From positions 62,001-126,000 of the IMG/VR virus record IMGVR_UViG_3300049215_000771: a DNA stretch of 64,000 nucleotides. One strand, written 5' to 3'. The translations under genes were made by a program, and so were the position numbers. Shown here piece after piece: positions 715-59,539 of this stretch. The notes beneath the pieces are model-generated. The model made no database searches and was not told the origin of the DNA. It was given only the letters and a program-made list of their open reading frames with translations. The stretch's first letter is position 1; every line of letters starts with the position of its first letter.

Positions 715-987
715 ATGACCACCAAAGTCACCCAAGCGGAATGCGAAGAGGCCAGGCCCGTTTGTGATCTGGTCTACACTGTCATCAAGGATCACCCGGA
801 AGGGATCAATTATCCCGACCTGATCCGTGAAATCAGGCTGCGGGGATGCACGATTTCTGATCTTTCGGAGCGTGTGCATTTTTCGCTGCACTGTATGGTT
901 TGTCACGGGGTTTGCGATAGGCTGGAAGCGCCGACCCTGGAGCGTATCTACCAACTTCCGGCACTGGAGAAGAAGTCCAATGAGTAA
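715..987 (+). CDS. hypothetical protein, possible winged-helix
   Basis: 90-aa ORF after the promoter; LVYTVIKDHPEGINYPDLIREI resembles a wHTH start. Confidence 0.55.
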   Translation: MTTKVTQAECEEARPVCDLVYTVIKDHPEGINYPDLIREIRLRGCTISDLSERVHFSLHCMVCHGVCDRLEAPTLERIYQLPALEKKSNE

Positions 988-1778
988 GCGCAAGAATCAG
1001 TGGTTCGAGGAACGCAAGGTCCAGCAGCCGGCGACTGTTTGTCTTTGAGGCAGCCAACACCCTTCTCGTCGAACTTCAGTTCGGCGAAGGCGGCACGGAC
1101 TCAAAGCTGTTCGTTGCTGACCTTCTACTCACCTACCAACGCTACGCCGCCATCAAAGGCTTCAAGACAGAACTCCTCTCCGAAGAAAATGGCAAAGCCA
1201 TGCTCAAGGTGATGGGGAAGAATGTCTGGACGGCCTTCAAGAATGAACCCGGCAAGCACGTTGTTCAGCGTGTGCCTCCGACCGAGCGTTCGGGGCGGTG
1301 GCAAACATCTGTGATTTCCGTCGCCGTCCTGCCGCTGCCCCCGGAAAACAAGCTGGTTCCACTCCAAGAAAAAGACTTGGAAATTACCACGCAAACCGGC
1401 AAGCAGAAGGCGGGCGGACAAAACGTCAACAAAGTCGCCAGCGCCGTCAGGATGAAGCATAAGCCTACGGGTCTGTCTGTATTCATCAACGGGCGGGACC
1501 AAGGCCAGAACAAGAAGGAAGCCCTGCATGTTCTGACGGCCAGGGTCAACCAGCTTCGTCTCGACAAGACCGCCTCCGATTACGACAATCTGAGGACGGG
1601 ACAGATGAAGGGAATCGGCGACAAACTCGGTGGTAGGGGCGACAAGATTCGTACCTACAACTTCATCAAGTCGAGGGTGGTGGATCACAGACTCGGCGTG
1701 AAGACCGGAAACATCAAGGAAGTGATGAAGGGAAACCTCACACTCCTGTTCGACAGTCAAGAAAAAGATGAAGAATAA
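980..1778 (+). CDS. prfA: class I peptide chain release factor, RF1-like, lacking domain 1; predicted +1 frameshift at 1043-1049 (about 265 aa)
   Basis: GGQ motif (AGGQNVNK), VQRVPPTE (PxT) and RTYNF..RVVDHR. RF homology (LVELQFGEGGTDSKLF) continues upstream of ATG 1200 to 1047 with no in-frame ATG/GTG/TTG. ATG 980 (GGAG upstream) opens a 22-codon frame ending CTT TGA. Confidence 0.85.
1043..1049 (+). other. candidate programmed +1 ribosomal frameshift site CUU-UGA
   Basis: CTT(1043-1045) TGA(1046-1048); the +1 codon GAG at 1047 is in the RF frame. Same core as the prfB shift site, but no Shine-Dalgarno 3 nt upstream. Confidence 0.6.
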
Positions 1779-1783
1779 CAAAG

Positions 1784-1821
1784 AAAAGGCCAGGCCGATT
1801 TGATTCGGCCTGGCCTTTTTT
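1784..1821. terminator. bidirectional intrinsic terminator
   Basis: AAAAGGCCAGGCCGA...TCGGCCTGGCCTTTTTT between convergent genes. Confidence 0.8.
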
Positions 1822-1833
1822 CCCTTTTTTGTT

Positions 1834-2610
1834 TCAATTAGCCTTGAATCGGACATATTTGTGGGCTGTCCAGAAGTCGGAAGCGAGTTCCGGGTTCTCG
1901 ATGTAAGCGTAAGGCATTTCAAAGTAACCACTCATGCCCCAGCTTGCGCCCCAGGAATTGCGGACCTTGACCATCTTCGTGGCGTCGTTATAGCCAACTG
2001 CACATACAGCGTGACCACCAACAACCTGCTCGCCAGGCTTCGGCATCGGCATGATGCCAGTGTTGGCAACAGCGTCAGACTCGAAACTTTCGTATACGAC
2101 GAAACCGAAAATGAAAGGGTAGCCCTGCGCCAAGCACTGCTTCATGGCGGTCAAATTGCCATCGCCAATCTGCAAGCCCTTGTCAATGCTGTGCCAGTAA
2201 CCATCAGACCAAACAGGCTTAGATGGTTTTTCGGCGAACTTGTTGCCCTGGTCGGTGTACGGCCACAGGCTTTCGTGAGGAACGCCAAATCGAACAAGGG
2301 TGTTCATGGCATGAGCCAGGGTAGAACCATCATCCGATTGGGTGGTTCCATCCTGAAGGCGGTTCCACCAGTAGATTGCCAAACGAGATGGTACAAACTC
2401 GCCCAGCTTCAATTTCATCATGAGGAATTCAGCGAAACCAGCGGCAGAGTTGCCGGTGCAGGAACCAAGCTGCCCCTGGTCGTAGACAGCCGGACATTGC
2501 GGCGTCAGGTCAACTTCTGCGGGAAGGTTTGCTGCCTCGATTTCGGGCAGGAACTTGTGAGGGTGGTCAATGACCGGACCCTTCTTCCAACCATATGCGT
2601 ATTTTCCCAT
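1834..2610 (-). CDS. papain-family (C1A) cysteine peptidase
   Basis: QGQLGSCTGN, GGHAVCAVGY and VRNSWG catalytic motifs. Confidence 0.9.
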   Translation of the reverse strand: MGKYAYGWKKGPVIDHPHKFLPEIEAANLPAEVDLTPQCPAVYDQGQLGSCTGNSAAGFAEFLMMKLKLGEFVPSRLAIYWWNRLQDGTTQSDDGSTLAHAMNTLVRFGVPHESLWPYTDQGNKFAEKPSKPVWSDGYWHSIDKGLQIGDGNLTAMKQCLAQGYPFIFGFVVYESFESDAVANTGIMPMPKPGEQVVGGHAVCAVGYNDATKMVKVRNSWGASWGMSGYFEMPYAYIENPELASDFWTAHKYVRFKAN

Positions 2611-2674
2611 AAGCCTCCATTCAAAACTGAGAGAAGAAAAGACATGAGTATGTATTCCTCAACAACAAGTTTCG

Positions 2675-3238
2675 ATGTACAATGACCATATGCAGCACGA
2701 CAAACTCACGAATCTGGTGAAAGAATTCGCCTTGTCATTTGGCGATTTCACCCTCTCTAGTGGCGCAAAATCCCCATATTTTGTGGATATGAGCAAGGTC
2801 ACAAACCACGGTGAAGGTTTGGATGTCATCACCCTGGAATTTTCCCGAATGATAGGAGATGCCGATGCCATTGGCGGTCCAGTTTTGGGCGCAGCCCCTC
2901 TTGTAGCTGGAACTATCTTGGCTCATCGCCGGGATCATTTCGGTATGGCGAAGCCATTGCGAGGTTTCCTGGTTCGTAAAGAGCCGAAAGATGGGGAATA
3001 TATTGAAGGTTTCCTGAAGAAAGGCGACAAAGTGGTAGTCGTTGAGGATGTTGTTACCACGGGGACGCAAACCTTCAATGCCATCAAGCACGTTGAGGCC
3101 GCAGGAGGCCGAGTTGTGGGTGTTCTGGCGGTTCTGGATCGTCTCGCCGGGGCCAAGGGGAAGCTGGCCGATTACCACTTCCGGGCGCTGCTCACGATAG
3201 AAGATTTGGGAATTTCTGCGAACCTAACGGCCCCTTGA
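2675..3238 (+). CDS. pyrE: orotate phosphoribosyltransferase
   Basis: GDFTLSSGAKSPYFVD, LVRKEPK and VVVVEDVVTTG PRPP-binding loop. Confidence 0.88.
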   Translation: MYNDHMQHDKLTNLVKEFALSFGDFTLSSGAKSPYFVDMSKVTNHGEGLDVITLEFSRMIGDADAIGGPVLGAAPLVAGTILAHRRDHFGMAKPLRGFLVRKEPKDGEYIEGFLKKGDKVVVVEDVVTTGTQTFNAIKHVEAAGGRVVGVLAVLDRLAGAKGKLADYHFRALLTIEDLGISANLTAP

Positions 3239-3258
3239 CGGGTCTTACTGGAGGCGAC

Positions 3259-3735
3259 ATGCACGTTGGCGATTTTTTCCGGGGTGTGGCCCGGTTTATT
3301 GACGAGAAGTTTGTACACTACGCTGGCAGGCCGCTGGTACACTACAGGCTCCTGCCGGTCAGTGTCAAACATGATGCGGACGGGTTGTATTACCCTGAGT
3401 CCACCGAGAAGAAGTGGGAAAACAAACCTACCTTTCTGCGAGGTTTTTACGAGATTCCTGTCTCGACAGCGACCGGCCAGTTTGGTATTGATGCACCAGA
3501 CGAAATGCTTGTTGAGTTGGGATTTAACGACACTGTGAAGGCGCTCGGCAAAGTTCCTGGCATCGGCGATCTCTTCCTGGATTGCAACCATGACAAGTGG
3601 ATTGTCGTCCAAAGAAGCAGAAAAGATGACATGGTGCGAGGCCAAAACCGCCTGATTTTGACAGTTTGTCGGTTCCAGGAGTCTGTGACTACGGGAGGCA
3701 AGCAAGATGTCGAACATCATCAAGGAACTGTATGA
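3259..3735 (+). CDS. hypothetical protein, resembles T4 gp14-like neck/head-completion proteins
   Basis: ATG 3259 after GGAGG; LYYPE...QFGID..DE...GKVPGIGDLF pattern recalled from neck proteins. Confidence 0.4.
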   Translation: MHVGDFFRGVARFIDEKFVHYAGRPLVHYRLLPVSVKHDADGLYYPESTEKKWENKPTFLRGFYEIPVSTATGQFGIDAPDEMLVELGFNDTVKALGKVPGIGDLFLDCNHDKWIVVQRSRKDDMVRGQNRLILTVCRFQESVTTGGKQDVEHHQGTV

Positions 3736-4846
3736 CAAGGGACTGGCAAGCTGTGGCGGACATCACTGGATGCCCGACAACATGCACTACATCACGATGA
3801 TGGGTTCGGTCGCCTACGGCGTCAGCAACGACACATCCGACACCGACATTTACTCCTTCTGCATCCCGCCGAAGGACAACTTGTTCCCGCACCTTCGGGG
3901 CGAGATCGTCGGGTTCGGCGATGCCAAGCACGCCAACAACAGGTTCCGCAACCATCAGCAGCATCACGTCAAGGATGTTGGCGCTGAGAAGGAGTACGAT
4001 CTCAACGTCTACAACATCGTTGACTACTTCCAGTTGGTGATGGAAAACAACCCGAACATGATCGACAGTTTGTTCACTCCGCAGTTCTGTGTTCTGCACA
4101 GTACCCGGATCGGCCAGATGGTTCGTGAGGCTCGGAAAACTTTCCTTCACCGTGGCGCATGGCACGCCTTCAAGGGCTACAGCTATGCTCAACTGAAAAA
4201 GATGAGGCCGGGCGAGGAATTGGTCTGCCCGGAGTGTGAGCAGATCAGCAAGGGGTGGCATTCCAAGGACAACAAGTTCGAGGTTGCCTACGCCTTGATG
4301 CTCGACTTGTGGGCAGCCCTGGAGCGTGACCAGGGAACTTTGACGGACGAGGAACTGGACAAGTATTGCTTTTACTGTGCCAAGTCCAGGAAGGTTTCCA
4401 AGCTGGAGAAGCAGAAGGTCAACCGGCGTGTCGGGAAGCGAAAGGAATCTGTCGAGAAGTACGGATTCGACCCGAAATTCGCCTACCACGTTGTTCGGCT
4501 CCTGGGTGAAATCGAACAGATTCTCACCGAGGGTGACATCGACCTGCAACGGAACCGTGAGCAACTGAAGTCCATCCGGCGTGGCGAATGGACTCTCGAA
4601 CAAATCGAGAGTTACTTCGCCGACAAGGAACCCCAGCTTGAAACTCTCTACAACGAGAACAAGGCTGGGTTGCCGTGGGGTCCGAAGGACGGGGACTTGC
4701 AGAAGAACGTCAAGCAGCTTCTTTTCCATTGCCTGGAAGAACACTACGGTTCGCTTGACAAGTGTGTGGTCAATGTCGATGCCGCCGCAAACGCCCTTCG
4801 GGAGATCGAGGGAATCGTCGCTCGTTACAGAAAGGCGCTTGCATGA
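3707..4846 (+). CDS. Pol-beta superfamily nucleotidyltransferase (RlaP/PF10127-like)
   Basis: GSVAYGVSNDTSDTDI, NNPNMIDSLF, KFAYHVVRLL. Confidence 0.8.
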   Translation: MSNIIKELYDKGLASCGGHHWMPDNMHYITMMGSVAYGVSNDTSDTDIYSFCIPPKDNLFPHLRGEIVGFGDAKHANNRFRNHQQHHVKDVGAEKEYDLNVYNIVDYFQLVMENNPNMIDSLFTPQFCVLHSTRIGQMVREARKTFLHRGAWHAFKGYSYAQLKKMRPGEELVCPECEQISKGWHSKDNKFEVAYALMLDLWAALERDQGTLTDEELDKYCFYCAKSRKVSKLEKQKVNRRVGKRKESVEKYGFDPKFAYHVVRLLGEIEQILTEGDIDLQRNREQLKSIRRGEWTLEQIESYFADKEPQLETLYNENKAGLPWGPKDGDLQKNVKQLLFHCLEEHYGSLDKCVVNVDAAANALREIEGIVARYRKALA

Positions 4847-6265: not shown

Positions 6266-6291
6266 CGCTTCCTCACTCTAATATGTAGTTA

Positions 6292-7629: not shown

Positions 7630-7684
7630 GATGGGGTTTCTACATATCATTGAAAGTTGTCAAACATTCACGGAGGACAATCTC

Positions 7685-7834: not shown

Positions 7835-7845
7835 GACAACTGAAT

Positions 7846-7878
7846 GAAAAAAGCGGGGATTATTTCCCCGCTTTTTTC
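7846..7878. terminator. bidirectional intrinsic terminator
   Basis: GAAAAAAGCGGGGA-TTATT-TCCCCGCTTTTTTC. Confidence 0.8.
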
Positions 7879-8471: not shown

Positions 8472-8478
8472 GCCATAT

Positions 8479-10812: not shown

Positions 10813-10821
10813 GAGGAAGAC

Positions 10822-11523
10822 ATGAGCGACAAACCCGCCATCTTGACGGAACTGGAGCGTGTGTACGAACTGTTGAATGAAAAGTTGTTCGATGGCAAGC
10901 TGAGTCCTGTCAATATCGTCATCGGTCGTGGCGCTGATTACCCGAAGAAGAAGGTGACACTGCGTTACTTCAACGAGTCGAAAAGCCTGGTCGTGGGAGC
11001 CGATTTCCCCGGCCTGGAATACGGCGATCTGCCGCTTGCGCTCCTGCACGAGATGATTCATATCAGGAATGCCCAGGCCGAAGTCGTCGATTGCACCACC
11101 AACCATTACCACAACAAGGCTTTCCTGACTGCGGCGCTTGCTGTGGGCCTCGTGGTCATCAAGCACAAGACCCAAGGGTGGTCGCTTACCACGACGATGT
11201 ATCCGAGGAACGTCGTCCAGAAAAAATACATCATGAAGCCCACCAGGGATGCCGCCACACGCCTTGGTGAAGTTTTCGCCCTCATCAAGTTCGACAAAAC
11301 GATCTTCAAACAAGCCAAGTCGGAAATCCGCCAACAAGCCAAAGAAGACAAGCCCAGCAAAACGTACTTCCTCAAGTACGTTTGCAACTGCCCTCCACCC
11401 CACAACAGCATTCGCAGCGGTCGCCGGCCCGATGGCCCCAATGCCCTCAATATCCAGTGCCAGAACTGTCATTCTACTTTCGTGTGCGTGACGGAACTGG
11501 ACCCCGATGATGAACAGGAGTAG
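10822..11523 (+). CDS. SprT-like zinc metalloprotease with C-terminal Zn ribbon (TAG stop)
   Basis: LLHEMIH (HExxH), YHNKAF; C-terminal YVCNC...IQCQNC. Confidence 0.75.
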   Translation: MSDKPAILTELERVYELLNEKLFDGKLSPVNIVIGRGADYPKKKVTLRYFNESKSLVVGADFPGLEYGDLPLALLHEMIHIRNAQAEVVDCTTNHYHNKAFLTAALAVGLVVIKHKTQGWSLTTTMYPRNVVQKKYIMKPTRDAATRLGEVFALIKFDKTIFKQAKSEIRQQAKEDKPSKTYFLKYVCNCPPPHNSIRSGRRPDGPNALNIQCQNCHSTFVCVTELDPDDEQE

Positions 11524-11526
11524 TCT

Positions 11527-11772
11527 GTGCCGCAGTCTGATGAAAGCATCCTCGCCCATATTCGGAGCGAACTCGCTACCAGTCCGCATGTGAAACAGTA
11601 CAAACTGACCGTTTCCTACACTGGTTGCGGAAGCATCAGCATCACCGGCACCGTCCGAAGCTACTTCCACAAGCAGATAGCGAACGAGGCCGTCAGAAAA
11701 GTTTTGCAAAATACCAAGACCACTATCTTATTCAAGAACGATATTGATGTGGTGTCGGAAAGTCATGGCTGA
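11527..11772 (+). CDS. BON-domain-like protein
   Basis: SISITGTVRSYFHKQIANEAV. Confidence 0.6.
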   Translation: MPQSDESILAHIRSELATSPHVKQYKLTVSYTGCGSISITGTVRSYFHKQIANEAVRKVLQNTKTTILFKNDIDVVSESHG

Positions 11773-18836: not shown

Positions 18837-18930
18837 GGAAGCGAATGCCGTCTGGTGTAGGCCGCAGTCTTCAAAACTGTTGTAGGGTGTGAACAACACT
18901 CTAGGAGGGTTCGATTCCCTTTCGCTTCCG
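18837..18930 (+). tRNA. selC: tRNA-Sec-like, anticodon UCA
   Basis: 8-bp acceptor GGAAGCGA/TCGCTTCC, 5-bp T stem with TTCGATT loop, TGGT D-loop, loop CTTCAAA (TCA at 18871-18873), 8-bp variable arm, G73; no encoded CCA. Confidence 0.85.
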
Positions 18931-19407
18931 TTCAACATACTCGGCGGCTTTTCTTAACAAGTCTGGATTGTCTTCAAATAAACCTAGAGCAGTGTTGCAA
19001 GTCCGACACAATAAACCACGAACATGCCCCTCAGCATGGCAGTGGTCAACAGCAAGTCGTTTGCCATCAGGATCGGGTTTTCCGCACAGGGCACACACGC
19101 CATTCTGTGATTCAAGTAACAAGTTGTAGTCATCAACTGATAAGCCAAATTCACGCCGAAGTTTGTTTTTCCAAACTACTTCGGCGTGATGTTTTTTGTC
19201 ACAGGTGGCATACCGTTTCTTGCAGTATGTTTTGTGCCATTCTTTGTTATTTTCGTAGCGGTCGCCGTATTTGTGACTGTTGTTTTTCCAGTAGTTTTGC
19301 TTGTACTTACGCTGGCAATCTCGACATTTGGTGTGCCGACGTTTTCCGCCATCACGGGGAGCGAATTCTTCAATCGGTTTGTCTATTTCGCAGGTGTTAC
19401 AAATCAT
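18901..19407 (-). CDS. endonuclease VII-like HNH (homing) endonuclease
   Basis: CNTC/CRDC Zn motifs; CALC...LAVDHCH..GHVRGLLCRTCNTALG. Confidence 0.85.
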   Translation of the reverse strand: MICNTCEIDKPIEEFAPRDGGKRRHTKCRDCQRKYKQNYWKNNSHKYGDRYENNKEWHKTYCKKRYATCDKKHHAEVVWKNKLRREFGLSVDDYNLLLESQNGVCALCGKPDPDGKRLAVDHCHAEGHVRGLLCRTCNTALGLFEDNPDLLRKAAEYVERKRKGIEPS

Positions 19408-23181: not shown

Positions 23182-23895
23182 ATGGGAAAACCTATTTTTC
23201 GTGTCATTGGTGACGTTCATGGTCACTACAACGCCTACGTCAATATCGCCAAGCAAGCTGAGAACAGTTTGCAGATTGGCGACTTGGGCTTTGAGTACGA
23301 TTGTTTGAAGCAATTGGACCCGGAGCATCACAAAGTTTTGGCCGGCAATCACGACAACTACGACAAGTGGGGGACGGAGAAGTTCATCCATATGCAGACC
23401 GGCCACTGGCTCGGCGATTATGGCGTGTACACTGTGCCTGGTTTTGGGGACATCTTCTTTGTTCGGGGTGGTTACTCTATTGACTGGAGATACCGGATGC
23501 CCGGTCGAAGCTGGTGGAAGGATGAGGAACTGACCTACGAAGAAATGCAGAAGGCTTTGGAACTTTACAACCAAGTGAAACCGGAGTATGTTTTCACTCA
23601 TGAGTGTCCTGGCGAGATCATCGACGCCGCCTTCGGTCAGAAAACATGGGATGGGGAGTTGTTGAAGCCCAGCATGACGGCGAAGTTGTTGGATACCATG
23701 TGGGGTAATCACGCCCCGAAGTATTGGTTGTTCGGCCATCATCACAAAACATGGACTGCGGAGTTGCGGGGTACGATCTTCCGTTGTCTCCCGGAGTTGG
23801 GGTTTGTGGATTTCGACAAGGATCGGGAGATCGTGTACGCAGAAAGTCCGGGAGGCAAGGCGTTGGCGAAACTTCAATCACAGGAATGGGATTAG
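23182..23895 (+). CDS. calcineurin-like metallophosphoesterase (TAG stop)
   Basis: GDVHG, GDLG, GNHD, THECP, FGHHH. Confidence 0.88.
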   Translation: MGKPIFRVIGDVHGHYNAYVNIAKQAENSLQIGDLGFEYDCLKQLDPEHHKVLAGNHDNYDKWGTEKFIHMQTGHWLGDYGVYTVPGFGDIFFVRGGYSIDWRYRMPGRSWWKDEELTYEEMQKALELYNQVKPEYVFTHECPGEIIDAAFGQKTWDGELLKPSMTAKLLDTMWGNHAPKYWLFGHHHKTWTAELRGTIFRCLPELGFVDFDKDREIVYAESPGGKALAKLQSQEWD

Positions 23896-27408: not shown

Positions 27409-27492
27409 GGGACCGTAGCTCAATGGTAGAGCAGGGGATTTGAATTGTGTCTCATAATCCCTTGGTTGCTGGTTCGAGTCCAGCCGGTCCCA
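27409..27492 (+). tRNA. tRNA(CAU), Ile2-like, with 12-nt insertion in the anticodon arm
   Basis: Acceptor GGGACCG/CGGTCCC, D stem GCTC/GAGC, T arm GCTGG-TTCGAGT-CCAGC; anticodon stem GGGGA/TCCCT encloses 19 nt instead of 7 (extra TTTGAATTGTGT, 27439-27450) before CTCATAA. Confidence 0.8.
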
Positions 27493-27503
27493 CAGGAGAT
27501 ACC

Positions 27504-33694: not shown

Positions 33695-35356
33695 ATGGGA
33701 CGTAAACTCGAAAAGTCCACCTACCCATCCGGCCACGGCCCGAACGATTTCCAGTGTTTCGGCCCGCCCGCCACCGAAGACGGGAATTTCGACACCTGCA
33801 AGATCGCCGACATGGGTTCCTTCTCCCAAGAGGAGAAAGATTCCAACAAGTATTATCACGCCGCCGTCGTCAAGTCGAAGATCAACGGCAACTACTACAC
33901 CTACTTCGAGTGGGGCCGGGTCGGGGCGTCCAAACCTGCTTTCCAGTTTGTCGAGTGTGGCAGCGAGGCCGACGCCCAGCGGGAATTCGCCGATCAGTGC
34001 CACGAGAAGAACGACAAGCGTGGCGTTTGGACAACCGTGGCGGGCCATCGCACGCTGACGGCCAAACCCAAGAAGGACGTGTATCTCGTCCGCCAACTCG
34101 CCACCCGTTCCACGGGTCTGCCCGATGCCAAAACCATCAAGCACACTGAGGGCGCAAAGCCGAAGCCGAAGCCCGGCAAGCCCGACGATGCCAGCGCTAC
34201 CGACAAGCCGACGAAGAAGGAAGCGAAACCAGCGGCCCCAGCCCGTCGTGCCGATCCAGTCACCAGTAAATTGCTTCAGGATTTGATCGGCGGCACGATC
34301 TCCTACACCCGTGGGAGCATGGCCGACGACTCGATTCCGACGCAAAATGCCATCGACATCGCTCGTGATGTTCTCACCGAGGCCGAGAAGCGACTGTTGA
34401 AGGTCGGCAACAGCCTCGATGACCAGATCGCCGACAAGGAACTTCGCCAGTTGTCCGGGGAACTGTACCGTCGCATCCCGAAGAAGAAGCCGGTTGGGAC
34501 GCCGGACAAGGTGTGGATTCTGTCCAGCGAGAATATCTTCTCCTGGCGGAACGACCTGGACGCCTTCGAGTCGGCGTTGTCGGCCCAGGCCGGCATTGAC
34601 GAACAGGCCGGTCAGGTTGCCGATCCCTTCCACGGCCTGCCCCTCACGATGGAATACATCGACCCGAAAACGGAACTCGGCAAGTTCCTCTACTTCTGGT
34701 GGCCGAAGGCGACGGCCAATCGCCACTACCACCTGAAAGACATGAAGATCAAGAATATGTGGAAGGTGGACCGCTTCGGCGACCCGGAGAAGGTTCGCCG
34801 CTCGCAGGACCGCATCGCCACCGAGATCGGCAAGGCGGCGCTGAAGGAACGGCCCTTGTTCCAGCCGTCCGAACGCTACGATGTTCCCGACATCAACGAG
34901 CGCAAGCTGTTCGGTCAGACCAACACGGCGCTGTTGTTTCACGGCACCCGTTCCGTCAACGTGAAGGGCATCTTGGAGAAGTCGCTGTTGCTGCCGAAGC
35001 AACTGGTCGGCGTTTCCATCAACGGGGCCATGTTTGGCCCTGGTCTGTATTGGGCCGATGACTGGAAGAAGTCGGCAGGCTACACCAGCTTGTCGGGTTC
35101 GCTCTACTCGGCGGGCTATGGCGGGGTTGCCGGTCGCCATGCCTTCATGTTCGCCGCCGATGTCGTCGTGGGGCAGCCACACGTTGCTCCTGGGCCGCAC
35201 GGTTATACCAGCCCGCCGAAGGGCCATCACTGTGTCTTCGGTATGGGCCGCAACCACACCAGCAGCCGCCAGAACAGCGGCGTGGAGAACAACGAGTGGA
35301 TCGTGTTCTCCGGTGAACAGTGCCGTCTCCGCTACCTGGCGGAATTCACGGCGTAA
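33695..35356 (+). CDS. WGR-domain poly(ADP-ribose) polymerase-like ADP-ribosyltransferase
   Basis: FEWGRVG (WGR); helical regulatory segment LSGELYRRIP; catalytic LLFHGT (H), MFGPGLYWAD (Y), NNEWIVF (E). Confidence 0.9.
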   Translation: MGRKLEKSTYPSGHGPNDFQCFGPPATEDGNFDTCKIADMGSFSQEEKDSNKYYHAAVVKSKINGNYYTYFEWGRVGASKPAFQFVECGSEADAQREFADQCHEKNDKRGVWTTVAGHRTLTAKPKKDVYLVRQLATRSTGLPDAKTIKHTEGAKPKPKPGKPDDASATDKPTKKEAKPAAPARRADPVTSKLLQDLIGGTISYTRGSMADDSIPTQNAIDIARDVLTEAEKRLLKVGNSLDDQIADKELRQLSGELYRRIPKKKPVGTPDKVWILSSENIFSWRNDLDAFESALSAQAGIDEQAGQVADPFHGLPLTMEYIDPKTELGKFLYFWWPKATANRHYHLKDMKIKNMWKVDRFGDPEKVRRSQDRIATEIGKAALKERPLFQPSERYDVPDINERKLFGQTNTALLFHGTRSVNVKGILEKSLLLPKQLVGVSINGAMFGPGLYWADDWKKSAGYTSLSGSLYSAGYGGVAGRHAFMFAADVVVGQPHVAPGPHGYTSPPKGHHCVFGMGRNHTSSRQNSGVENNEWIVFSGEQCRLRYLAEFTA

Positions 35357-40259: not shown

Positions 40260-41489
40260 ATGTTCAATCTCTCCGAGGCGCTGGAGGCTCTGAAGGGCCA
40301 CGACGAGTTTGCAATCAAGGCTTATGACGGCCTGGTTACGCTTGACTACATTTTATGCTTCCCAGGCTCGTTCGATGCCGCAGAAGCCGAAATCGTGGCT
40401 CGTGGAGAGGCACAGGCTCACCGGGATGCAGAAATTCGCCGGAACTGTCGAGGGGTGACTTTCGACGAAAAGACTGGCGAGATCGTGTCTTTGCCGCTGC
40501 ACAAGTTTTTCAACATCGGCCAGACCGAGCAAACGCAGTTCCGCCACTTAACGTCCTGCAAGGCACGGATTTACGAGAAGATGGATGGTTCGATGATCCA
40601 CTTCTTCGTCCACCCGCACCGTCAGGAGTTGCTGGCGTCCACCTGCCGCTCGACGCAAACGCCCCAGGCGCAGGAGTCGCTGGGGCTGGCGAAGAAGAAC
40701 CAGCTTGTCTACGGCAAGATTCTCGCTATCATCGGTGAGGGTTGGACTCCGGTTTTCGAGTACGTCGCTGCACACAACCAGATCGTGGTGCAATATCCAC
40801 GTCCCCGGTTGGTGTATCTGATCTCTCGTCACCGGAAGACGGGCGAGTATAAGTTCCACGAAGGGTTCCCGGATACGGCAACGTATTTTGAGTTTCCCTT
40901 CCAGGACATCAACAACTACTTGGACCGCAAGGAATTCGAGGGCTACGTTTGCCACCTGGAATTCACGGAAGATGTTTCGTGCATCAAGGCGAAGAAGGGT
41001 GACAAGACGATTGTGAAGGCCAAGACGCCCTGGTACTTGGAGCGTCACCGGGCAGTGGATGCCCTGATGAGGCCGACCTACAAGTTGTACCAGGTCGTGT
41101 TCGATGGTGTCATGGACGACCTGTTGCCAACGGCTCCTGATCGGTTCAAGCCGAAGCTGGTTGGAATCTACGAAGAGGCGCAGCGTGATCTACTGAACGA
41201 GCAGCGCCGTGTTGAGAAGTTGTTCGATCTTTCGTTGGCGGCAGTGGAATCCGTTTGGAGCAGGACGTTCTCTCACGGAAAGCTGCCGGAACGCAAGATG
41301 GATCGGGTTCTCCGCAAGGCGTTCGTTGAGTACATCCAGCAGCACTACAAGTCGGATTTCTCTCTGCTGATGGCCCTGTATCTCGGCAATGACCCGTCTC
41401 CCACCATCAAGGACCGATTGATGGAAGGGTACAAGCTAAAGTACCCAAATCGGCTTTTTGCTGATTTGGAAGAAGAAGCTGTCGCATGA
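40260..41489 (+). CDS. T4 Rnl1-like RNA ligase
   Basis: CRGVTFD, LHKFFN, YEKMDGSMI, VFEY, EGYV, KAKTPWY. Confidence 0.88.
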   Translation: MFNLSEALEALKGHDEFAIKAYDGLVTLDYILCFPGSFDAAEAEIVARGEAQAHRDAEIRRNCRGVTFDEKTGEIVSLPLHKFFNIGQTEQTQFRHLTSCKARIYEKMDGSMIHFFVHPHRQELLASTCRSTQTPQAQESLGLAKKNQLVYGKILAIIGEGWTPVFEYVAAHNQIVVQYPRPRLVYLISRHRKTGEYKFHEGFPDTATYFEFPFQDINNYLDRKEFEGYVCHLEFTEDVSCIKAKKGDKTIVKAKTPWYLERHRAVDALMRPTYKLYQVVFDGVMDDLLPTAPDRFKPKLVGIYEEAQRDLLNEQRRVEKLFDLSLAAVESVWSRTFSHGKLPERKMDRVLRKAFVEYIQQHYKSDFSLLMALYLGNDPSPTIKDRLMEGYKLKYPNRLFADLEEEAVA

Positions 41490-41783: not shown

Positions 41784-42512
41784 ATGCCAATCCAGATTGG
41801 AAACATCGAGAAGAAAACCGACTCCCGCTGGCTCAACCTGTTTGAAGTCGATTATATCGGCATGACAGGCAAACCCGGCAAATGGCAGTTCGCCTCACGC
41901 AATCCCAACCCACAGCCCGGCCCCAATCCCATCACATCCAACGCCGTCATCATCGTTCCCCTCCTCAAAGATGGGCGCAAGCGGAAACTCGTCGTCATCA
42001 AGGAATTTCGCATTCCCCTGGGTGATTACGAGTATGCCGTCCCTGCCGGCCTGTTCGATCCGGGCGAGGAACTTGTCAAAACCGTCAAGCGGGAACTGAA
42101 GGAAGAAACGGGCTTGAAAGGGACGAAGATTCTCGTCACCAGCCCCGCCGTGGTTTCCAGCGCTGGCCTTTCCGATGAAGCCGTCAACTACGTTTTCGTC
42201 GAATGCACTGGCATCCCTGACAACAGTGGCAACGAGGGTACTGAAGACATCACCATCGAAGTTCTGGACATCGAAGGCGTGGCGAAACTCCGACGCTCCG
42301 GGGCCAAGATGTCTTCCAAGTTGTGGCCCATCCTCCTCATGTTCGAGGCGATGGGAAAAATCGCCATTCCCAGGAGCATCAGAGATGAAAATCGTAAGGC
42401 ATTACAACGAGGAAGAACTGAAGCAACTGCTGACCAAAGCGGTGGAGTTTCCGCAGAAGAACCGGCAGTTGAAGGTGAAGGAGATCAAGTTCCGAGTCAC
42501 GGAGCAGCGTGA
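41784..42512 (+). CDS. Nudix hydrolase, ADP-ribose pyrophosphatase-like
   Basis: KEFRIP...PAGLFDPGE.......RELKEETG; SSAGLSDE. Confidence 0.85.
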   Translation: MPIQIGNIEKKTDSRWLNLFEVDYIGMTGKPGKWQFASRNPNPQPGPNPITSNAVIIVPLLKDGRKRKLVVIKEFRIPLGDYEYAVPAGLFDPGEELVKTVKRELKEETGLKGTKILVTSPAVVSSAGLSDEAVNYVFVECTGIPDNSGNEGTEDITIEVLDIEGVAKLRRSGAKMSSKLWPILLMFEAMGKIAIPRSIRDENRKALQRGRTEATADQSGGVSAEEPAVEGEGDQVPSHGAA

Positions 42513-42582
42513 CGCCCACGACCGGCCTGGATTCGGGAACGTCGTCGAAGCGGAGATCGAAGTGGAGGAAGAAGAAAGATGA
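42385..42582 (+). CDS. small hypothetical protein
   Basis: AGGAG RBS; overlaps the Nudix tail; ATGA overlap with the next gene. Confidence 0.5.
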   Translation: MKIVRHYNEEELKQLLTKAVEFPQKNRQLKVKEIKFRVTEQRDAHDRPGFGNVVEAEIEVEEEER

Positions 42583-43580
42583 ACCTAAAAGACAAAGTAC
42601 GAGGAACCTTCCTGGGCCTCGCCATTGGCGATGCCCTGGGGAAAGCTACGGAATCGCTGTCGTTCAACACCATCATGGAGAAGTTCGGCAGGATTACCGA
42701 CTACATCAGCAATCCCCACCACAAGTATTTCGATGGCGCTCCCGTTGGCTCCTGGACTGACGACACTCAGCTTTCTCTTGCTGTGGCTCGTGGCATTGCC
42801 CACAAAGGCGAATTCGACCTGGATGCCATTGCCGAGGAACATTGTGTTGAGTTCATGAAAACTGTGGCTGGTTGGGGCAACACTACCAGAGAAGCCATCG
42901 CCAAGATCGTGGACGGTGGGCACTGGTCCCAGGCCAGCCTCACAGACCAACCCAACCGAGGCGTCGGCAATGGCGTGGCAATGAAGGTTGCCCCTGTTGG
43001 TTGCTACATGGCCTTGACCAACCCCGAATGCAACAACCCGCAGTGGGGCGAGGATGTGAAAAAGCTGATGAAGCTGGCGACTATGACGCACTTCACCAGC
43101 ATGGCGATTACTTCGGGATTCGCCCAAACCTTCGCCGTGTTCAAGTGCATGATGTCGGACCCCGAAAACTTCGATGTCAAGTCCTTCATCCGAACCATCA
43201 ACGGCGCAGGCATGATGGGGCGGCGGTACTTGTTCAAGACCATTACCCAGGATGACATTGCCAACAGGTTCGGCCTGTTGGAAAAATACGACGAGTACCC
43301 GCCCGAACGCATCATCGCCGAGTTGAAGGGTAGCTGCTACGTCTACGAGTCGCTGCCGTTCACCTTCATGTTCTTCGTCCGTAACCCACACAGTATTGAA
43401 ACGCTGTACGATGTGGTGACGGCGGGCGGGGACACGGACACCAATGGCTCCATGCTCGGCGCTCTCCTGGGCGCTCTGCACGGCACAGACATCTTTCCCG
43501 AACATCTGGTTGACGGCCTCCGTGAACGTGAGATGGTCATGGAAGTCGCCGACAGGATGTACGACAAGTTGAAGGGCTAA
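42579..43580 (+). CDS. ADP-ribosylglycohydrolase (DraG/ARH family)
   Basis: GLAIGDALG, WTDDTQ, GNGVAMK.AP, GGDTDT. Confidence 0.92.
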   Translation: MNLKDKVRGTFLGLAIGDALGKATESLSFNTIMEKFGRITDYISNPHHKYFDGAPVGSWTDDTQLSLAVARGIAHKGEFDLDAIAEEHCVEFMKTVAGWGNTTREAIAKIVDGGHWSQASLTDQPNRGVGNGVAMKVAPVGCYMALTNPECNNPQWGEDVKKLMKLATMTHFTSMAITSGFAQTFAVFKCMMSDPENFDVKSFIRTINGAGMMGRRYLFKTITQDDIANRFGLLEKYDEYPPERIIAELKGSCYVYESLPFTFMFFVRNPHSIETLYDVVTAGGDTDTNGSMLGALLGALHGTDIFPEHLVDGLREREMVMEVADRMYDKLKG

Positions 43581-45570: not shown

Positions 45571-46002
45571 ATGATGGACGTTTGCAACAACCGGAAGGCC
45601 CGCTATGATTACCATATCCTCGATACTGTCGAGGCGGGGATCGTATTGCAGGGCACTGAAGTCAAGGCTCTCCGGGCCAAACTTGCCTCATTGGAAGGTT
45701 CTTACGCCGTCATTCGTGACGGCGAAGTGTGGATGATTGGCTCTCATGTTGAAGAGTACGACCACGGCAACCATCACAACCACAACCCCAAGCGGGAGCG
45801 GAAGCTGTTGGTCAAGCGACACGACATCAAGAAACTTTCTGGTGAGGTTCGTGTGAAGGGAAAAACCCTCGTGCCCCTTCGCATTTACTTCTCCGGGCGC
45901 TGGGCCAAGGTGGAACTGGCGCTGGCGCAGGGCAAGCAGACGCACGATAAACGGCAAACCCTGAAAGAAAGGGAGCAGCGTAAGGAAATGAAGGGCTATT
46001 GA
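45571..46002 (+). CDS. smpB: SsrA-binding protein
   Basis: NRKARYDY, EAGIVLQGTEVK, RKLL, LVPL.IYF, GKQTHDKR. Confidence 0.95.
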   Translation: MMDVCNNRKARYDYHILDTVEAGIVLQGTEVKALRAKLASLEGSYAVIRDGEVWMIGSHVEEYDHGNHHNHNPKRERKLLVKRHDIKKLSGEVRVKGKTLVPLRIYFSGRWAKVELALAQGKQTHDKRQTLKEREQRKEMKGY

Positions 46003-47021: not shown

Positions 47022-47663
47022 ATGAAGGAATATCCGAAGATTCTTGGTCCCTACGATGCAGCCCACGGACAACCGTGCATCGCATTCTACAAACTGGACG
47101 GCTCGAATCTTCGGTTTGAATGGAACCCGAAGTCGGGCTGGTACAAATTTGGAACCCGCCGACAATTGTTCCATCCCACTGATCCGGTCTATGGGTCGGC
47201 TGTGGAAATCTTTCTCCGAAAGTACGGCGATGGCTTAATCAAAGTCATACGAGAAAACTCCGCATATCGGAAGGTTGATGGCTTGATCGCTTATGCCGAG
47301 TTCTTCGGCCCGCATAGTTTCGCCGGCAAGCACGATGCCGAGTTTTTGGGTGTTGAATCCAATGACCCCAAAGATGTGGTGTTGTTCGACATCAATATCA
47401 ACAAGAAGGGTTTTGTCTCTCCAGAAAAATTTGTTGAGCATTTTGGGCATTTGCATATTCCCGAAGTGGTCTACCGTGGCCCATTTGACCGGGATTTCAC
47501 CGAGTCAATTCGCAACAATACCCTGGGCGTTCCACTCGTCGAGGGCGTCGTCGCTAAGGGCGGCGAAGGGCATAAACTCTGGATGAGGAAGGTCAAAACC
47601 CTCGCATATCTCAAAGAACTCAAAGAACGCCTGGGAACTGGCTGGGAGCAGTATTGGGAATGA
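47022..47663 (+). CDS. RNA ligase-like covalent nucleotidyltransferase
   Basis: FYKLDGSN, AYAEFFG, VLFDI, EGVVAK, KVKT. Confidence 0.75.
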   Translation: MKEYPKILGPYDAAHGQPCIAFYKLDGSNLRFEWNPKSGWYKFGTRRQLFHPTDPVYGSAVEIFLRKYGDGLIKVIRENSAYRKVDGLIAYAEFFGPHSFAGKHDAEFLGVESNDPKDVVLFDININKKGFVSPEKFVEHFGHLHIPEVVYRGPFDRDFTESIRNNTLGVPLVEGVVAKGGEGHKLWMRKVKTLAYLKELKERLGTGWEQYWE

Positions 47664-51317: not shown

Positions 51318-51321
51318 GTGC

Positions 51322-51350: not shown

Positions 51351-51356
51351 AGGCTC

Positions 51357-54817: not shown

Positions 54818-54826
54818 TACCCAGGT

Positions 54827-54867
54827 AACACCCTGGCTGCGCCGCCTTCGCAGCCAGGGTGTTTTTG
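54827..54867 (+). terminator. intrinsic terminator
   Basis: AACACCCTGGCTGCG...CGCAGCCAGGGTGTTTTTG. Confidence 0.85.
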
Positions 54868-54883
54868 TTTCTGGAGTTTCAAC

Positions 54884-55579: not shown

Positions 55580-55589
55580 GGATTATGTC

Positions 55590-57841: not shown

Positions 57842-57860
57842 TCTAGTCACCGACAGTGGT

Positions 57861-58139
57861 ATGTTGTGTAGCTGGATTCACTGGCCCAAGAACTTCATCA
57901 AGAATTTGTTCACCGAAGGTTATCGTTTTCTCAAGAACGATATTTTCGGATGGAACCTGGGTGCTATGGCCTGGGTCCAGTGGTTCCTCGTATTGTCGCC
58001 GTTCGCCTTTCACGGCTGGAGCGGTGGCTGGGAACATTTGTGGAACCACAACGCTCCAGTCATTTTTATCCTGTTCCTGGCAGCGTTTTTCAGTCGGTCT
58101 AAATCAAGGCGCACCAGTTGTGGCAACGATGACGACTAG
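57861..58139 (+). CDS. membrane protein (TAG stop)
   Basis: Hydrophobic, Trp-rich. Confidence 0.5.
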   Translation: MLCSWIHWPKNFIKNLFTEGYRFLKNDIFGWNLGAMAWVQWFLVLSPFAFHGWSGGWEHLWNHNAPVIFILFLAAFFSRSKSRRTSCGNDDD

Positions 58140-58142
58140 GAC

Positions 58143-58171
58143 TTTACAACCATACCGAAACGGGGTATTAT
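58143..58171 (+). promoter_or_regulatory. sigma70-type promoter
   Basis: TTTACA-17-TATTAT. Confidence 0.7.
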
Positions 58172-58190
58172 GCGGGAGGAGGACAGACCG

Positions 58191-58745
58191 ATGGATTTTG
58201 AGGTTCCCGCCAACGTCGAGATTCATAAGCAAGCCATTCCGGGCGGGTGGTCTTACCCGCTCAAAACCAGCGAGATTGTGACCGCCCTTGACCTGGGCGA
58301 TCTGGATAAGAAGATCGACATTTTTTATATGAACGACCGTCCAGGTCCAACCCTTCCTCGCAACCAGAAGAAATACCGCTCCGAGGGGTGGTTCAACATT
58401 TTTTCCATCACCTGGTATGGGCATATGCGTAAGTCCGAGATGCACTTCTTCATGGGTGTGCATCTTTGCAAGCCCAAGTACCGGCAGCGGCTCAACAAAA
58501 TCATCACAGAAGAAGTGTTCCCGGTCATTAAGCCCTGGATGAAAGATGTTGGGAGATTACCAAACATCAACAGCATCTCCCTCGACTATCACACCTTCTT
58601 CCCCAAACCCGGCGTGTACCAAAAACTGGAATGGGGTTTGGAACTGCGAGAGAACAAGGACCACCGCAAGTGGTTCAAAGTCATCGACCTGGACAAGAAG
58701 GAAGGCGAAGATGAAGGCGCAGAAGGGACAGTTCTGGCGACGTAA
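58191..58745 (+). CDS. hypothetical protein
   Basis: GGAGGA RBS. Confidence 0.6.
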   Translation: MDFEVPANVEIHKQAIPGGWSYPLKTSEIVTALDLGDLDKKIDIFYMNDRPGPTLPRNQKKYRSEGWFNIFSITWYGHMRKSEMHFFMGVHLCKPKYRQRLNKIITEEVFPVIKPWMKDVGRLPNINSISLDYHTFFPKPGVYQKLEWGLELRENKDHRKWFKVIDLDKKEGEDEGAEGTVLAT

Positions 58746-59148
58746 TCACGAGTGTATTTGGGTCCGTTTCGTTTTTGGTATTGAGGATGATACCGTTCAC
58801 TTCTTGGAATATCAACCCAATGGTGTCGTGCCATACCGTGGTTCCGAGAAGATGTACGAAGAAGACGAAGATTACCCTTCCTGGGTTCAGATCAGCGCCC
58901 CGGAAGCGGAGTTGTTGATTGTCAACATGAAGGATCAGGACACCGAGTACAGCTATCGCCTGGGGAAGAAGGCTGACGCCGAAAAATTGGCCCAGGCGTT
59001 GAAGATACTGGAACGGAAGAAGGTATCGTCGGTTTGTATCCGTGACAACGTGGTTCGTATATCGACCGACAACGGGGCAGAATACGAGATCGCTTTGACG
59101 AGGGATGGGTATTCGAGCAGGCAGACTGGCCTGCCTGACCCGTGGTGA
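58711..59148 (+). CDS. hypothetical protein
   Basis: MKAQKGQFWRRN... Confidence 0.55.
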   Translation: MKAQKGQFWRRNHECIWVRFVFGIEDDTVHFLEYQPNGVVPYRGSEKMYEEDEDYPSWVQISAPEAELLIVNMKDQDTEYSYRLGKKADAEKLAQALKILERKKVSSVCIRDNVVRISTDNGAEYEIALTRDGYSSRQTGLPDPW

Positions 59149-59157
59149 GGAAAAGCC

Positions 59158-59388
59158 ATGCCGAGGATTAAGTCGGGCGTTCAGAAGAAGCGCAAAAACT
59201 TCGATATTGCTGTCAAGCATCTCGATATGCTTGAGTATATCAAGAAGAAGCACAACATGGATTCTGACACGGAAGCCGTGCGTTGGTGCATTGCTCACAC
59301 TTTCTCCGTTGAAAAAATGGAGGAAGACAGCATCCAAATGCGGTTCGTAGATAAAGAAGGGAAAATTCGTGGAGTGATCTTCCTTTAA
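59158..59388 (+). CDS. small ribbon-helix-helix-like protein
   Basis: KNFDIAVKHLDMLEYIKKKHNMDSDTEAVRWCI. Confidence 0.5.
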   Translation: MPRIKSGVQKKRKNFDIAVKHLDMLEYIKKKHNMDSDTEAVRWCIAHTFSVEKMEEDSIQMRFVDKEGKIRGVIFL

Positions 59389-59392
59389 GACT

Positions 59393-59463
59393 GCCCCGTT
59401 GGTACATTGGCTGTGCCGTGGCCTCTAAAGCCACAGAAGTCGGTTCGATTCCGGCACGGGGTA
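59393..59463 (+). tRNA. amber suppressor tRNA, anticodon CUA (copy 1)
   Basis: GCCCCGT/ACGGGGT acceptor, GTGGC-CTCTAAA-GCCAC (CTA at 59425-59427), GTCGG-TTCGATT-CCGGC, A73. Confidence 0.85.
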
Positions 59464-59466
59464 CAA

Positions 59467-59539
59467 GCCCTGGTAGCTCAGTGGTCAGAGCGGTTGACTC
59501 TAAATCAACGTGTCGTGGGTTCGATCCCCACCCAGGGCG
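59467..59539 (+). tRNA. amber suppressor tRNA, anticodon CUA (copy 2)
   Basis: GCCCTGG/CCAGGGC acceptor, GCTC/GAGC D stem, GTTGA-CTCTAAA-TCAAC (CTA at 59500-59502), GTGGG-TTCGATC-CCCAC, G73. Confidence 0.88.

Follow-up and report, generated by a model that had tools for sequence, protein, structure and literature searches.

How does a giant phage make a release factor whose full reading frame appears to have no start codon, and does that factor belong to a larger system for altering what stop codons mean? Both questions are raised by the window analysed here, a stretch of 64,000 nucleotides (positions 62,001 to 126,000 of IMG/VR record IMGVR_UViG_3300049215_000771) from a giant phage whose contig measures 533 kb in IMG/VR and 673 kb in ENA. 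The first-pass annotation had listed five elements, a release factor behind a UGA shift site, a UCA tRNA, smpB and two CUA tRNAs, and proposed that they form one timed stop-codon switch. All five were recovered where they had been placed, by ARAGORN, Rfam, Pfam, NCBIfam and inspection of the sequence. The most striking is the release factor, a shortened RF1-type protein that apparently can be made only through a +1 frameshift at a stop codon. On balance we favour reading the window as an accessory region in the genome of a giant phage (~0.5-0.7 Mb), with many genes that serve translation, RNA repair or ADP-ribose metabolism; the five elements would be separate members of a toolkit and not a single module, and the RF1-type factor would be made via frameshift. 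Aminoacyl-tRNA synthetases and Pth2 are encoded by neighbouring genes, as are RNA ligases and enzymes that act on ADP-ribose.

Anatomy and class of the release-factor gene

The release-factor gene and its surroundings are made up as follows.

715-987: upstream ORF, 90 aa, whose TAA stop (985-987) overlaps the leader ATG
980-1048, plus strand: leader ORF (ORF0), ATG, 22 sense codons and TGA, read directly from the sequence
1043-1049, plus strand: predicted +1 frameshift site CTT TGA G, with CTT and the stop conserved in homologous loci
1047-1778, plus strand: RF1-like release factor body, 243 codons and TAA, domains 2-4 only (Pfam, NCBIfam, PDB, AF2, Foldseek)
1275-1283, plus strand: PPT tripeptide of the release factor
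1413-1421, plus strand: GGQ motif of the release factor
1776-1778, plus strand: TAA stop of the release-factor body

The body consists of the second half of the PCRF domain (Pfam positions 100-194 of 194; E = 1.8e-23) and the RF-1 domain (E = 1.3e-21). Domain 1, about 100 N-terminal residues, is absent, and only the 22-codon leader lies upstream. Among the NCBIfam models prfA scores best (212.6 bits, under its equivalog cutoff of 400, over positions 105-338 of 347), ahead of prfB (152.5) and prfH (46.6), which together with the PPT tripeptide bears out the earlier assignment to the PxT (RF1) type. Comparison with the PDB gave 135-141 bits for RF1, against 86-105 for RF2 and 49 for the PrfH structure. 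The AF2 model is a confident fold (pLDDT 85.7) and matches ribosome-bound RF1 in Foldseek with TM-scores of 0.82-0.84. The closest phage match is the huge-phage genome LR756511, from the set of Al-Shayeb et al. 2020. Since both PxT and GGQ are kept, UAA and UAG are the stops at which the factor is expected to act in peptide release.

The body lies in the +1 frame relative to the leader, behind CTT TGA G, as the first-pass annotation had it. From the stop at 981 as far as ATG 1200, the release-factor frame contains no ATG, GTG or TTG, and judged from the sequence normal initiation seems impossible for the frame as a whole. The gene callers' version of the protein is a 192-aa ORF that starts from ATG 1200 only.

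The predicted shift site across the release-factor family

In homologous loci drawn from huge phages, metagenomes and some bacterial MAGs, with identities of 34-87%, CTT stands directly 5' of the leader stop in 99 of 112 cases (79 of the 92 loci in one set and all 20 in a second; binomial p ~4e-135). Their leaders start with ATG and typically have 17-23 codons; when the loci are aligned the flanks diverge, leaving CTTT-stop as the only invariant block. Several loci carry a stop in the release-factor frame 3-5 codons 5' of the shift site, and the 13 family members without the site have an ordinary Shine-Dalgarno (SD) sequence and an ATG a few codons past the equivalent position. Family members scarcely differ in the residues encoded from the shift site to the first ATG (GEGGxDSKLF...Y..YA), which means that this stretch must be translated.

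The family forms a single clade (SH-aLRT 98) that groups with RF1 references and not with RF2. GGQ is invariant, and PxT is found in most of the 103 unique family proteins, with conserved Gln and Thr around the tripeptide; some members have PxS, PxN or GxT in its place, so that codon specificity is not certain. The stop at the shift site is TGA in about half of the family, TAG in about half (40 of 85 unique sites) and TAA once; it varies among close relatives, and its type switches at least 20 times on the family tree. Directly after the stop comes C at 65 of the 85 unique sites, as in prfB, and G in the window. No clear SD-like stimulator is present at the window's site (upstream sequence CGGCGACTGTTTGT), and SD-like tetramers are not enriched upstream of the shift site (30/85 versus 27/85 in a control window), with AGGGGG or AGGAG found there in some relatives. 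This lack of a family-wide excess suggests that the details of the mechanism may not be those of prfB.

We infer the following course for the frameshift itself and for its physiological logic. Ribosomes would initiate at ATG 980, translate 22 codons and arrive at CUU UGA, where the UGA in the A site would await RF2 while the peptidyl-tRNA-Leu re-pairs. Fast recognition by RF2 would release a 22-residue peptide, with no further product, whereas slow recognition would let the peptidyl-tRNA-Leu slip from CUU to UUU, after which the 243-codon release-factor frame would be read. With a UGA shift site before it, the synthesis of the factor should depend on the efficiency of UGA termination and, because slippage would occur when UGA recognition is slow, output would rise as the termination capacity of the infected cell falls. 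RF2 reads the sensing codon whereas the product is of RF1 type, so the circuit would be cross-wired and not autoregulatory. The hallmark of autoregulation, a stop readable by the encoded factor, is absent here (UGA with a PxT factor) and present in those relatives whose shift site carries UAG or UAA; these would be true autoregulators. In the phage of the window, extra RF1-type activity could take UAA stops, leaving RF2 for the many UGA stops.

tRNAs, SmpB and the stop code of the phage

The remaining elements, and a further tRNA, are the following.

18837-18930, plus strand: Sec-type tRNA, anticodon UCA (ARAGORN; Rfam RF01852, 76.5 bits, gathering score 47)
27409-27493: fourth tRNA (ARAGORN and Rfam)
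45571-46002, plus strand: smpB, 143 aa (Pfam SmpB, E = 1e-55; NCBIfam SmpB, 194 bits, cutoff 130)
59393-59464, plus strand: tRNA(CUA) copy 1, amber (ARAGORN; Rfam 50.2 bits)
59467-59540, plus strand: tRNA(CUA) copy 2, amber, with a tRNA-Lys-like body (ARAGORN; Rfam 71.1 bits)

The Sec-type tRNA has an 8-bp acceptor stem, a long variable arm and a discriminator G (sequence and fold). In the ~130 kb of genome searched we saw neither SelA, SelB or SelD nor an in-frame TGA flanked by coding signal, as a selenocysteine system with its SECIS element would have; a single AIRS-family protein is encoded nearby, and it resembles PurM and is not SelD. The nearest tRNAs to the first CUA copy are just 65-73% identical, and the second copy shares 88.7% identity over 62 nt with an annotated phage tRNA-Lys and 72% with the CUA tRNA of relative L006. 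SmpB has a C-terminal tail that in alignment is 6-8 residues shorter than in bacterial SmpB and lacks the conserved Trp; its lineage has few phage relatives, on contigs different from those of the release factor. ARAGORN found no tmRNA in ~130 kb, and neither did Rfam in the window plus two flanking loci. A host tmRNA could serve the phage SmpB.

The simplest account of the amber tRNAs, the Sec-type tRNA and SmpB is that they were acquired independently. That account leaves unexplained an enrichment that is real: tRNAs with stop anticodons are 3 of 7 in ~130 kb of the phage, against 4 of 193 in the loci of relatives (Fisher p = 9e-4).

In the DNA covered, the code itself appears to be standard. 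Inside coding frames no in-frame TAG or TGA was found in ~130 kb of genome, a sample that excludes late and structural genes, and ORF coverage under the standard code amounts to 0.90-0.99. TAG serves there as a regular stop, terminating 8 of 64 well-patterned ORFs, and TGA terminates 44 of 85 rough gene calls. An RF1-type factor would fit TGA recoding, but TGA is, by that count, a common stop here.

Classical recoding of late genes is a possible reading, although we consider it unlikely: as is the case in Lak and crAss-like phages, the two CUA tRNAs would read in-frame TAG in structural and lysis genes located in other parts of the 673-kb genome, and the release factor would be unrelated. Recoded phages keep the standard code in their early region, which bears the suppressor tRNAs, and in jumbo phages recoded stops have been found in hallmark genes; two amber tRNAs in a standard-coded region would suit this picture, as would the phage-encoded synthetases, including a GluRS-like enzyme, 13-25 kb upstream. 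However, TAG-recoded phages encode RF2, whereas the RF1-type factor found here would cut TAG read-through short. Recoding modules have a release factor that leaves the reassigned codon alone; here an RF1-type factor and amber tRNAs occur together and oppose each other at UAG, as had been recognised at the outset. Two differing CUA tRNAs, one of them Lys-like, would moreover decode ambiguously, and TAG behaves as a stop throughout the 130 kb seen.

Equally doubtful, in our judgement, is a role for the short factor in ribosome rescue, like that of PrfH or ArfB, by which, with Pth2, SmpB and RNA-repair enzymes, it would sustain translation when host defences cut mRNA, tRNA or rRNA. Domain 1 is absent in PrfH too, Pth2 lies 4 kb upstream of the release-factor gene, and two RNA ligases, an RlaP-type nucleotidyltransferase and a Ro60-like protein share the region with SmpB. 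The altered tripeptides of some family members would be compatible with such a role, and induction by stalled termination would suit it. Against this stand the retained RF1 decoding elements (PxT in the majority of members, with Gln and Thr conserved around it), the low PrfH scores (46.6 bits for the model and 49 for the structure, versus 135-212 for RF1) and the lack of an RtcB partner among annotated neighbours.

A single programme run by the phage, as originally proposed, has less in its favour. UAG would be read through in one phase and termination restored in another, gated by the efficiency of UGA termination, with release factor, amber tRNAs and opal/Sec tRNA acting together and SmpB clearing stalled ribosomes. 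Every part does lie within one genome region, stop-anticodon tRNAs are enriched, synthesis of the factor should hinge on UGA termination, and a published model already proposes a timed code change for recoded phages. But the ~130 kb free of recoded codons, with TAG as a regular terminator, speak against it, as do the variability of the shift-site stop among near-identical relatives and one relative (L006) that joins a TAG shift site with a nearby CUA tRNA. The parts are dispersed, 17-41 kb apart with unrelated genes between, and the first-pass annotation was right to caution that they are not clustered. Nor do they travel as an integrated set: a stop-anticodon tRNA lies within 10 kb of the release-factor gene in only 4 of ~100 relatives' loci, SmpB is not co-inherited with the factor, and no tmRNA appeared in the DNA searched. 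The co-occurrence check that had been suggested thus found the elements independent in relatives, but it is a weak test because relatives are seen only as 20-kb pieces, reaching 10 kb to either side of the release-factor gene, and distances between the parts here run to 17-58 kb. Overall we find such a programme improbable. A related idea is no easier to credit, namely that the shift site is a cross-wired sensor that turns RF2 shortage at UGA into RF1-type factor and, with the amber and opal-type tRNAs, rebalances the three stop codons during infection, TAG-containing late genes lying elsewhere in the 673-kb genome. That the gene is a decaying remnant, a truncated and frameshifted pseudogene, as the short called ORF and the sub-cutoff prfA score might suggest, is scarcely credible for an architecture shared by more than 120 protein clusters with 52 invariant columns, with a confident predicted fold and with CTT and a stop at the same place in loci too divergent to be assembly copies of one sequence.

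Comparison with known systems

A toolkit of separate translation genes, with a frameshifted RF1-type factor among them, resembles several known systems in part. The catalogued translation genes of huge phages include RF1/RF2, SmpB, tmRNA, synthetases and tRNAs (Al-Shayeb et al. 2020), and that catalogue mentions neither the missing domain nor the frameshift site. The code-change modules of recoded phages also bring together, in DNA that follows the standard code, suppressor-type tRNAs, synthetases and a release factor; unlike them, the region here has no recoded codons in the ~130 kb, a factor type mismatched to the amber tRNAs, non-adjacent parts, and TAG and TGA both as stops. Like PrfH (RF-H, paired with RtcB2), the factor is without domain 1 and stands apart from the housekeeping factors; unlike PrfH, it scores far below that model's cutoff of 166.65 bits, keeps an RF1-type decoding motif and has no RtcB neighbour. 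With canonical RF1 (PrfA) it shares the PCRF and RF-1 domains, PxT, GGQ and its top sequence and fold matches, and it differs in the absence of domain 1, a score below the equivalog cutoff and the need for a frameshift.

In textbooks the prfB frameshift serves as the example of a gene gauging its own product on the ribosome. If a family of RF1-type factors uses the same device, the circuit is portable between release-factor types, accepts any stop codon (UAG and UGA about half each, UAA once) and can be cross-wired between both termination pathways. Current annotation mis-calls such genes as N-terminally truncated ORFs, as with the 192-aa call here. The family offers natural variants for probing +1 frameshift efficiency without an SD stimulator, and it raises the role of a release factor that lacks the RF3- and stalk-contacting domain in giant phages, Obscuribacterales and Pirellulaceae.

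A +1 frameshift at a stop has so far been described for RF2 only: a 2025 survey of more than 12,000 bacterial genomes reported no programmed frameshift site in prfA, and its prfB sites, in 8,164 genomes, were 98.6% TGA and never TAG. As in prfB, the gene described here has a short leader ORF (22 codons, against 25 in E. coli), a slippery CUU followed by a stop, and a class-I release factor body in the +1 frame, with C the usual base after the stop in the family. Unlike in prfB, the shift site immediately precedes domain 2, as there is no domain 1; the product is a PxT, RF1-type factor and not an SPF RF2; the family's sites are UGA, UAG or UAA, with no general SD-like stimulator; and in the window's phage the product should not read the codon that does the sensing.

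A shortened RF1-type release factor and its setting

The release-factor gene is divided between a short leader and a body in the +1 frame, with a hairpin close behind the predicted shift site:

Elements of the release-factor gene (window coordinates)
980: ATG of the leader ORF; 22 codons, ending CTT TGA G (1043-1049)
1047-1778: release-factor body, +1 frame from 1047; 243 codons, TAA at 1776-1778
1061-1090: hairpin, 9-bp core (12 pairs with the outer stem), starting 21 nt after the UGA of the shift site

The body contains an RF-1 domain and, of PCRF, the second half only; both PPT and GGQ are present. Since the match begins at position 105 of the prfA model, domain 1, the part of a release factor that touches the L11 stalk and RF3, is absent. 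The factor is RF1-type on all measures used: it scored 212.6 bits against the NCBIfam model for RF1, 152.5 against RF2 and 46.6 against PrfH, with corresponding values of 135-141, 86-105 and 49 bits against PDB sequences, and its AlphaFold model (pLDDT 85.7) superposes on ribosome-bound RF1 with a TM of 0.82-0.84. None of the NCBIfam models is dedicated to this family. After its stop at 981 the release-factor frame contains no ATG, GTG or TTG until the ATG at position 1200, and the residues encoded in this interval are nearly invariant among homologues; they must thus be translated, and the sole upstream start lies in the -1 frame.

The ORF is found with 100% identity on IMGVR_UViG_3300049215_000771 (532,729 bp), where window position 1 corresponds to about contig position 62,001, and an ENA scaffold (ERZ12294693 scaffold_68_c1; 673,178 bp) carries the same genes as the window. 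A near-identity DNA search of the window against the phage collection gave no match; the best phage match of the release factor itself, at 50% identity, is in the huge phage LR756511 (595 kb). The window has a G+C content of 54%, with most genes on the + strand, and also encodes FolD and a sigma-like factor. Exact-protein look-ups added ~66 kb and widened the view to ~130 kb (window -28.6 kb to +101 kb), about 20% of the genome; the late genes all lie outside this region, and no structural genes were met within it. The sequence offered no repeated 14-mers by which other parts of the genome could be located, and the protein search returned no HNH paralogues. Upstream of the release factor lies an island of translation genes:

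Translation genes of the upstream island (flanking loci L142, L140 and L136; window -28.6 kb to 0)
922-aa class I synthetase
class II synthetase core
GluRS-like enzyme
MetRS (477 bits)
Pth2
HisRS N-terminal fragment, 205 aa
Ro60-like vWA protein
tRNA-Met and tRNA-Val

As a serious alternative to the regulated termination factor that we propose below, the protein may act in rescue together with Pth2 and SmpB. A 95-aa ORF amid these translation genes (L136:5436-5723) has a recorded Pfam match to the T4 major capsid protein family (Gp23). Two further sets of enzymes were observed. One resembles an RNA-repair system (40260-41489, 47022-47663, 3707-4846, 23182-23895 and 29185-30189) and consists of an Rnl1-like RNA ligase, a second RNA ligase, an RlaP-type nucleotidyltransferase, a metallophosphoesterase and an HD phosphohydrolase. 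The other acts on ADP-ribose or NAD (33695-35356, 42579-43580, 60797-61582 and 41784-42512 in the window, and L136:2947-3465) and includes a PARP-like enzyme with a WGR domain, two ADP-ribosylglycohydrolases, NUDIX hydrolases and NADAR, with a PRPP synthetase and a phosphoribosyltransferase close by.

The shift site across the family

Both domains recurred in more than 120 protein-search clusters (190-290 aa), many of which lie on contigs of 0.2-0.67 Mb. Homologous-locus DNA was retrieved from viral contigs (28 loci), metagenomes (78) and species-representative genomes (20), and site positions were anchored by tblastn. In the -1 frame, CTT runs directly into a stop at 79 of the 92 phage and metagenome loci that could be evaluated and at 20/20 genome loci; by chance, CTT would precede the stop at about 1 locus in 64 (binomial p ~4e-135). 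The 13 members that lack the site have an ordinary SD and ATG start a few codons past the equivalent position. The site typically lies ~12 codons (range 4-14) ahead of the conserved GEGG, and at several loci a stop in the release-factor frame is found 3-5 codons 5' of it. When 26 diverse sites were aligned, the CTTT-stop block alone was fixed; the 85 unique sites have C as the base after the stop in 65 cases and TGT as the codon before the site in 37.

An SD-like stimulator was dropped as a family feature, since SD-like tetramers are not enriched upstream of the site (30/85, against 27/85 in a control window); none is evident at the site of the window. The hairpin, which lies in the codons of the conserved LVELQFGEGG, was likewise dropped, both as a SECIS element and as a stimulator of frameshifting, because the 81-nt stretch has a z-score of only -2.1. 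In several relatives (L010-L014, L012, L071, L131 and others) the tRNA genes closest to the release factor are those of tRNA-Leu (UAG, CAA, UAA or GAG). tRNA-Leu is the tRNA that would have to slip at CUU; this proximity may be coincidental.

The stop at the 85 unique sites is TGA in 44, TAG in 40 and TAA in 1. In a quick tree search of 92 unique family members with a few reference factors (E. coli RF1, E. coli RF2, Acinetobacter RF1 and Enterococcus RF1), for which a root on E. coli RF2 was chosen, the family formed a single clade (SH-aLRT 98) joining the RF1 references. The stop type changed at least 20 times on this tree, at least 7 of these changes being forced by well-supported branches, and the nearest relatives of the window carry TGA (L109, L031), TAG (L032, L034, L030) or TAA (L003). 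Judged from the sequences, the site appears to act as "a stop" and not as any particular stop codon. Of 103 unique proteins, 59 have PPT as the tripeptide and the rest have other PxT forms or, in a few cases, PxS, PxN or GxT, and stop type showed no link with the PxT variant among these 103 proteins.

The same gene occurs in MAGs of Obscuribacterales/Melainabacteria (on contigs of up to 1.1 Mb), of Pirellulaceae and of one cyanobacterium (L109-L128). The Obscuribacterales/Melainabacteria site reads AGA/CAC CTT TAG C, with the leader ATG 17-19 codons upstream, and the Pirellulaceae loci have TAG or TGA at the site and longer leaders. Neighbours at the MAG loci are cellular genes (e.g., MsrAB, a short-chain dehydrogenase, a SNF2 helicase or MetRS), none of them conserved across these loci. 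The gene's setting amid ordinary cellular genes makes the family a cellular one too; some other matches labelled as MAGs are probably misbinned phage contigs.

Stop-anticodon tRNAs, SmpB and stop-codon usage

The first-pass annotation had proposed that the release factor, a tRNA(UCA), SmpB and two tRNA(CUA) genes form one system that switches the meaning of stop codons. All these parts are present as it described them (ARAGORN, Rfam and ORF matches), and four tRNA genes in the window were called by both ARAGORN and Rfam:

tRNA genes and SmpB (window coordinates unless a locus is given)
18837-18930: selenocysteine-type tRNA(UCA); RF01852, 76.5 bits
27409-27493: tRNA with a 19-nt anticodon loop; Rfam 64.9 bits, ARAGORN Phe(GAA)
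45571-46002: SmpB
59393-59464: tRNA(CUA), copy 1; ARAGORN and Rfam
59467-59540: tRNA(CUA), copy 2; ARAGORN and Rfam
L136:2790-2871: tRNA-like gene with an 18-nt anticodon loop; Rfam 49.1 bits, ARAGORN four-base anticodon (aagg)

Integration of the proposed parts into one system is unsupported, as there are no recoded codons in ~130 kb and the parts rarely occur together in the relatives viewed. An alternative genetic code was dropped, since no TAG or TGA flanked by coding signal on both sides was found in the ~130 kb. Standard-code ORF coverage is 0.90-0.99, and the larger ORF totals obtained with TGA as sense are off-frame artefacts. Within this ~130 kb TAG is an ordinary stop, closing 8 of the 64 ORFs whose GC3 pattern is clear. 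The lone TAG with a long in-frame extension, at 11521-11523, ends gene 10822-11523; behind it a BON-like ORF of 82 codons continues in the same frame (together 10822-11772), so that amber suppression would fuse both. Read-through into this extension was dropped: the BON-like ORF has its own SD and a GTG at 11527, and the arrangement is therefore one of ordinary coupling.

Relatives were viewed as 20-kb pieces, within 10 kb of the release-factor gene, which often lies inside or beside large tRNA arrays. Stop-anticodon tRNAs are rare in this range, being found only at L006/L044 and L019 (CUA) and at L029 (UCA); at L006 the CUA tRNA occurs together with a TAG site. Of the 323 viral contigs with an SmpB, the best 80 include a single one with the release factor, that of the window itself, and the contigs of SmpB matches differ in size from those of release-factor matches. 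What counts toward integration is that three of the seven tRNAs of the ~130 kb have stop anticodons, an enrichment (Fisher p 9e-4) for which we offer no explanation.

By similarity, tRNA(CUA) copy 2 resembles tRNA-Lys, and copy 1 gave no amino-acid assignment. A SelD beside the selenocysteine-type tRNA was dropped, the upstream AIRS-family protein being PurM-like. An endonuclease VII-family ORF (18901-19407, - strand) ends within the 3' end of the same tRNA gene, with a 30-nt overlap, an arrangement typical of mobile nucleases beside phage tRNA genes. The tRNA at 27409-27493 has a 12-nt insert after position 37, without which its anticodon would be UGA in a class I (short variable arm) body. 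The tRNA-like gene of L136, ~6.5 kb upstream of window position 1 and directly after the MetRS gene, may be intron-bearing or a non-decoding tRNA.

The relatives of SmpB are a handful of phage-like proteins, followed by bacterial SmpBs of ~60% identity (Erythrobacter and other Sphingomonadales). In the phage protein and its few phage-like relatives the C-terminal tail is 6-8 residues shorter than in bacterial SmpB and lacks the conserved tail Trp. The window itself was the sole match in the single-protein SmpB scan, and no tmRNA was found by ARAGORN in ~130 kb or by Rfam in the window and two flanking loci.

Proposed regulation and comparison with known release factors

To the gene anatomy, site conservation, RF1 affinity and fold observed here we add a mechanism by analogy with prfB. 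When the ribosome waits at UGA, peptidyl-tRNA-Leu would slip from CUU to UUU and the release factor would be made, as a frameshift product of 265 residues; with fast RF2 termination at UGA, only the 22-residue leader would result. Falling termination capacity would thus lead the factor to accumulate, one possible cause being the loading of RF2 by phage messages (44 of 85 rough gene calls end in TGA). UAA is a stop for both RF1 and RF2, so that more RF1-type activity would leave RF2 available for UGA; a UGA-gated RF1-type factor could thus close a feedback loop that is indirect but sensible. In relatives whose site has UAG or UAA, the factor would be directly autoregulatory.

We found no report of frameshift in RF1-type or phage release factors in open-access papers and preprints; the huge-phage catalogue records RF1/RF2, SmpB and tmRNA and does not mention frameshift. 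In recoded phages, suppressor tRNAs are paired with RF2 (TAG-recoded) or RF1 (TGA-recoded). A 2025 survey of more than 12,000 bacterial genomes gives TGA in 98.6% of prfB sites and TAG in none, with no evidence of programmed frameshift in prfA. The prfB gene of E. coli K-12, read here as a control, has 25 codons and then CTT TGA C, the same architecture as the family site.
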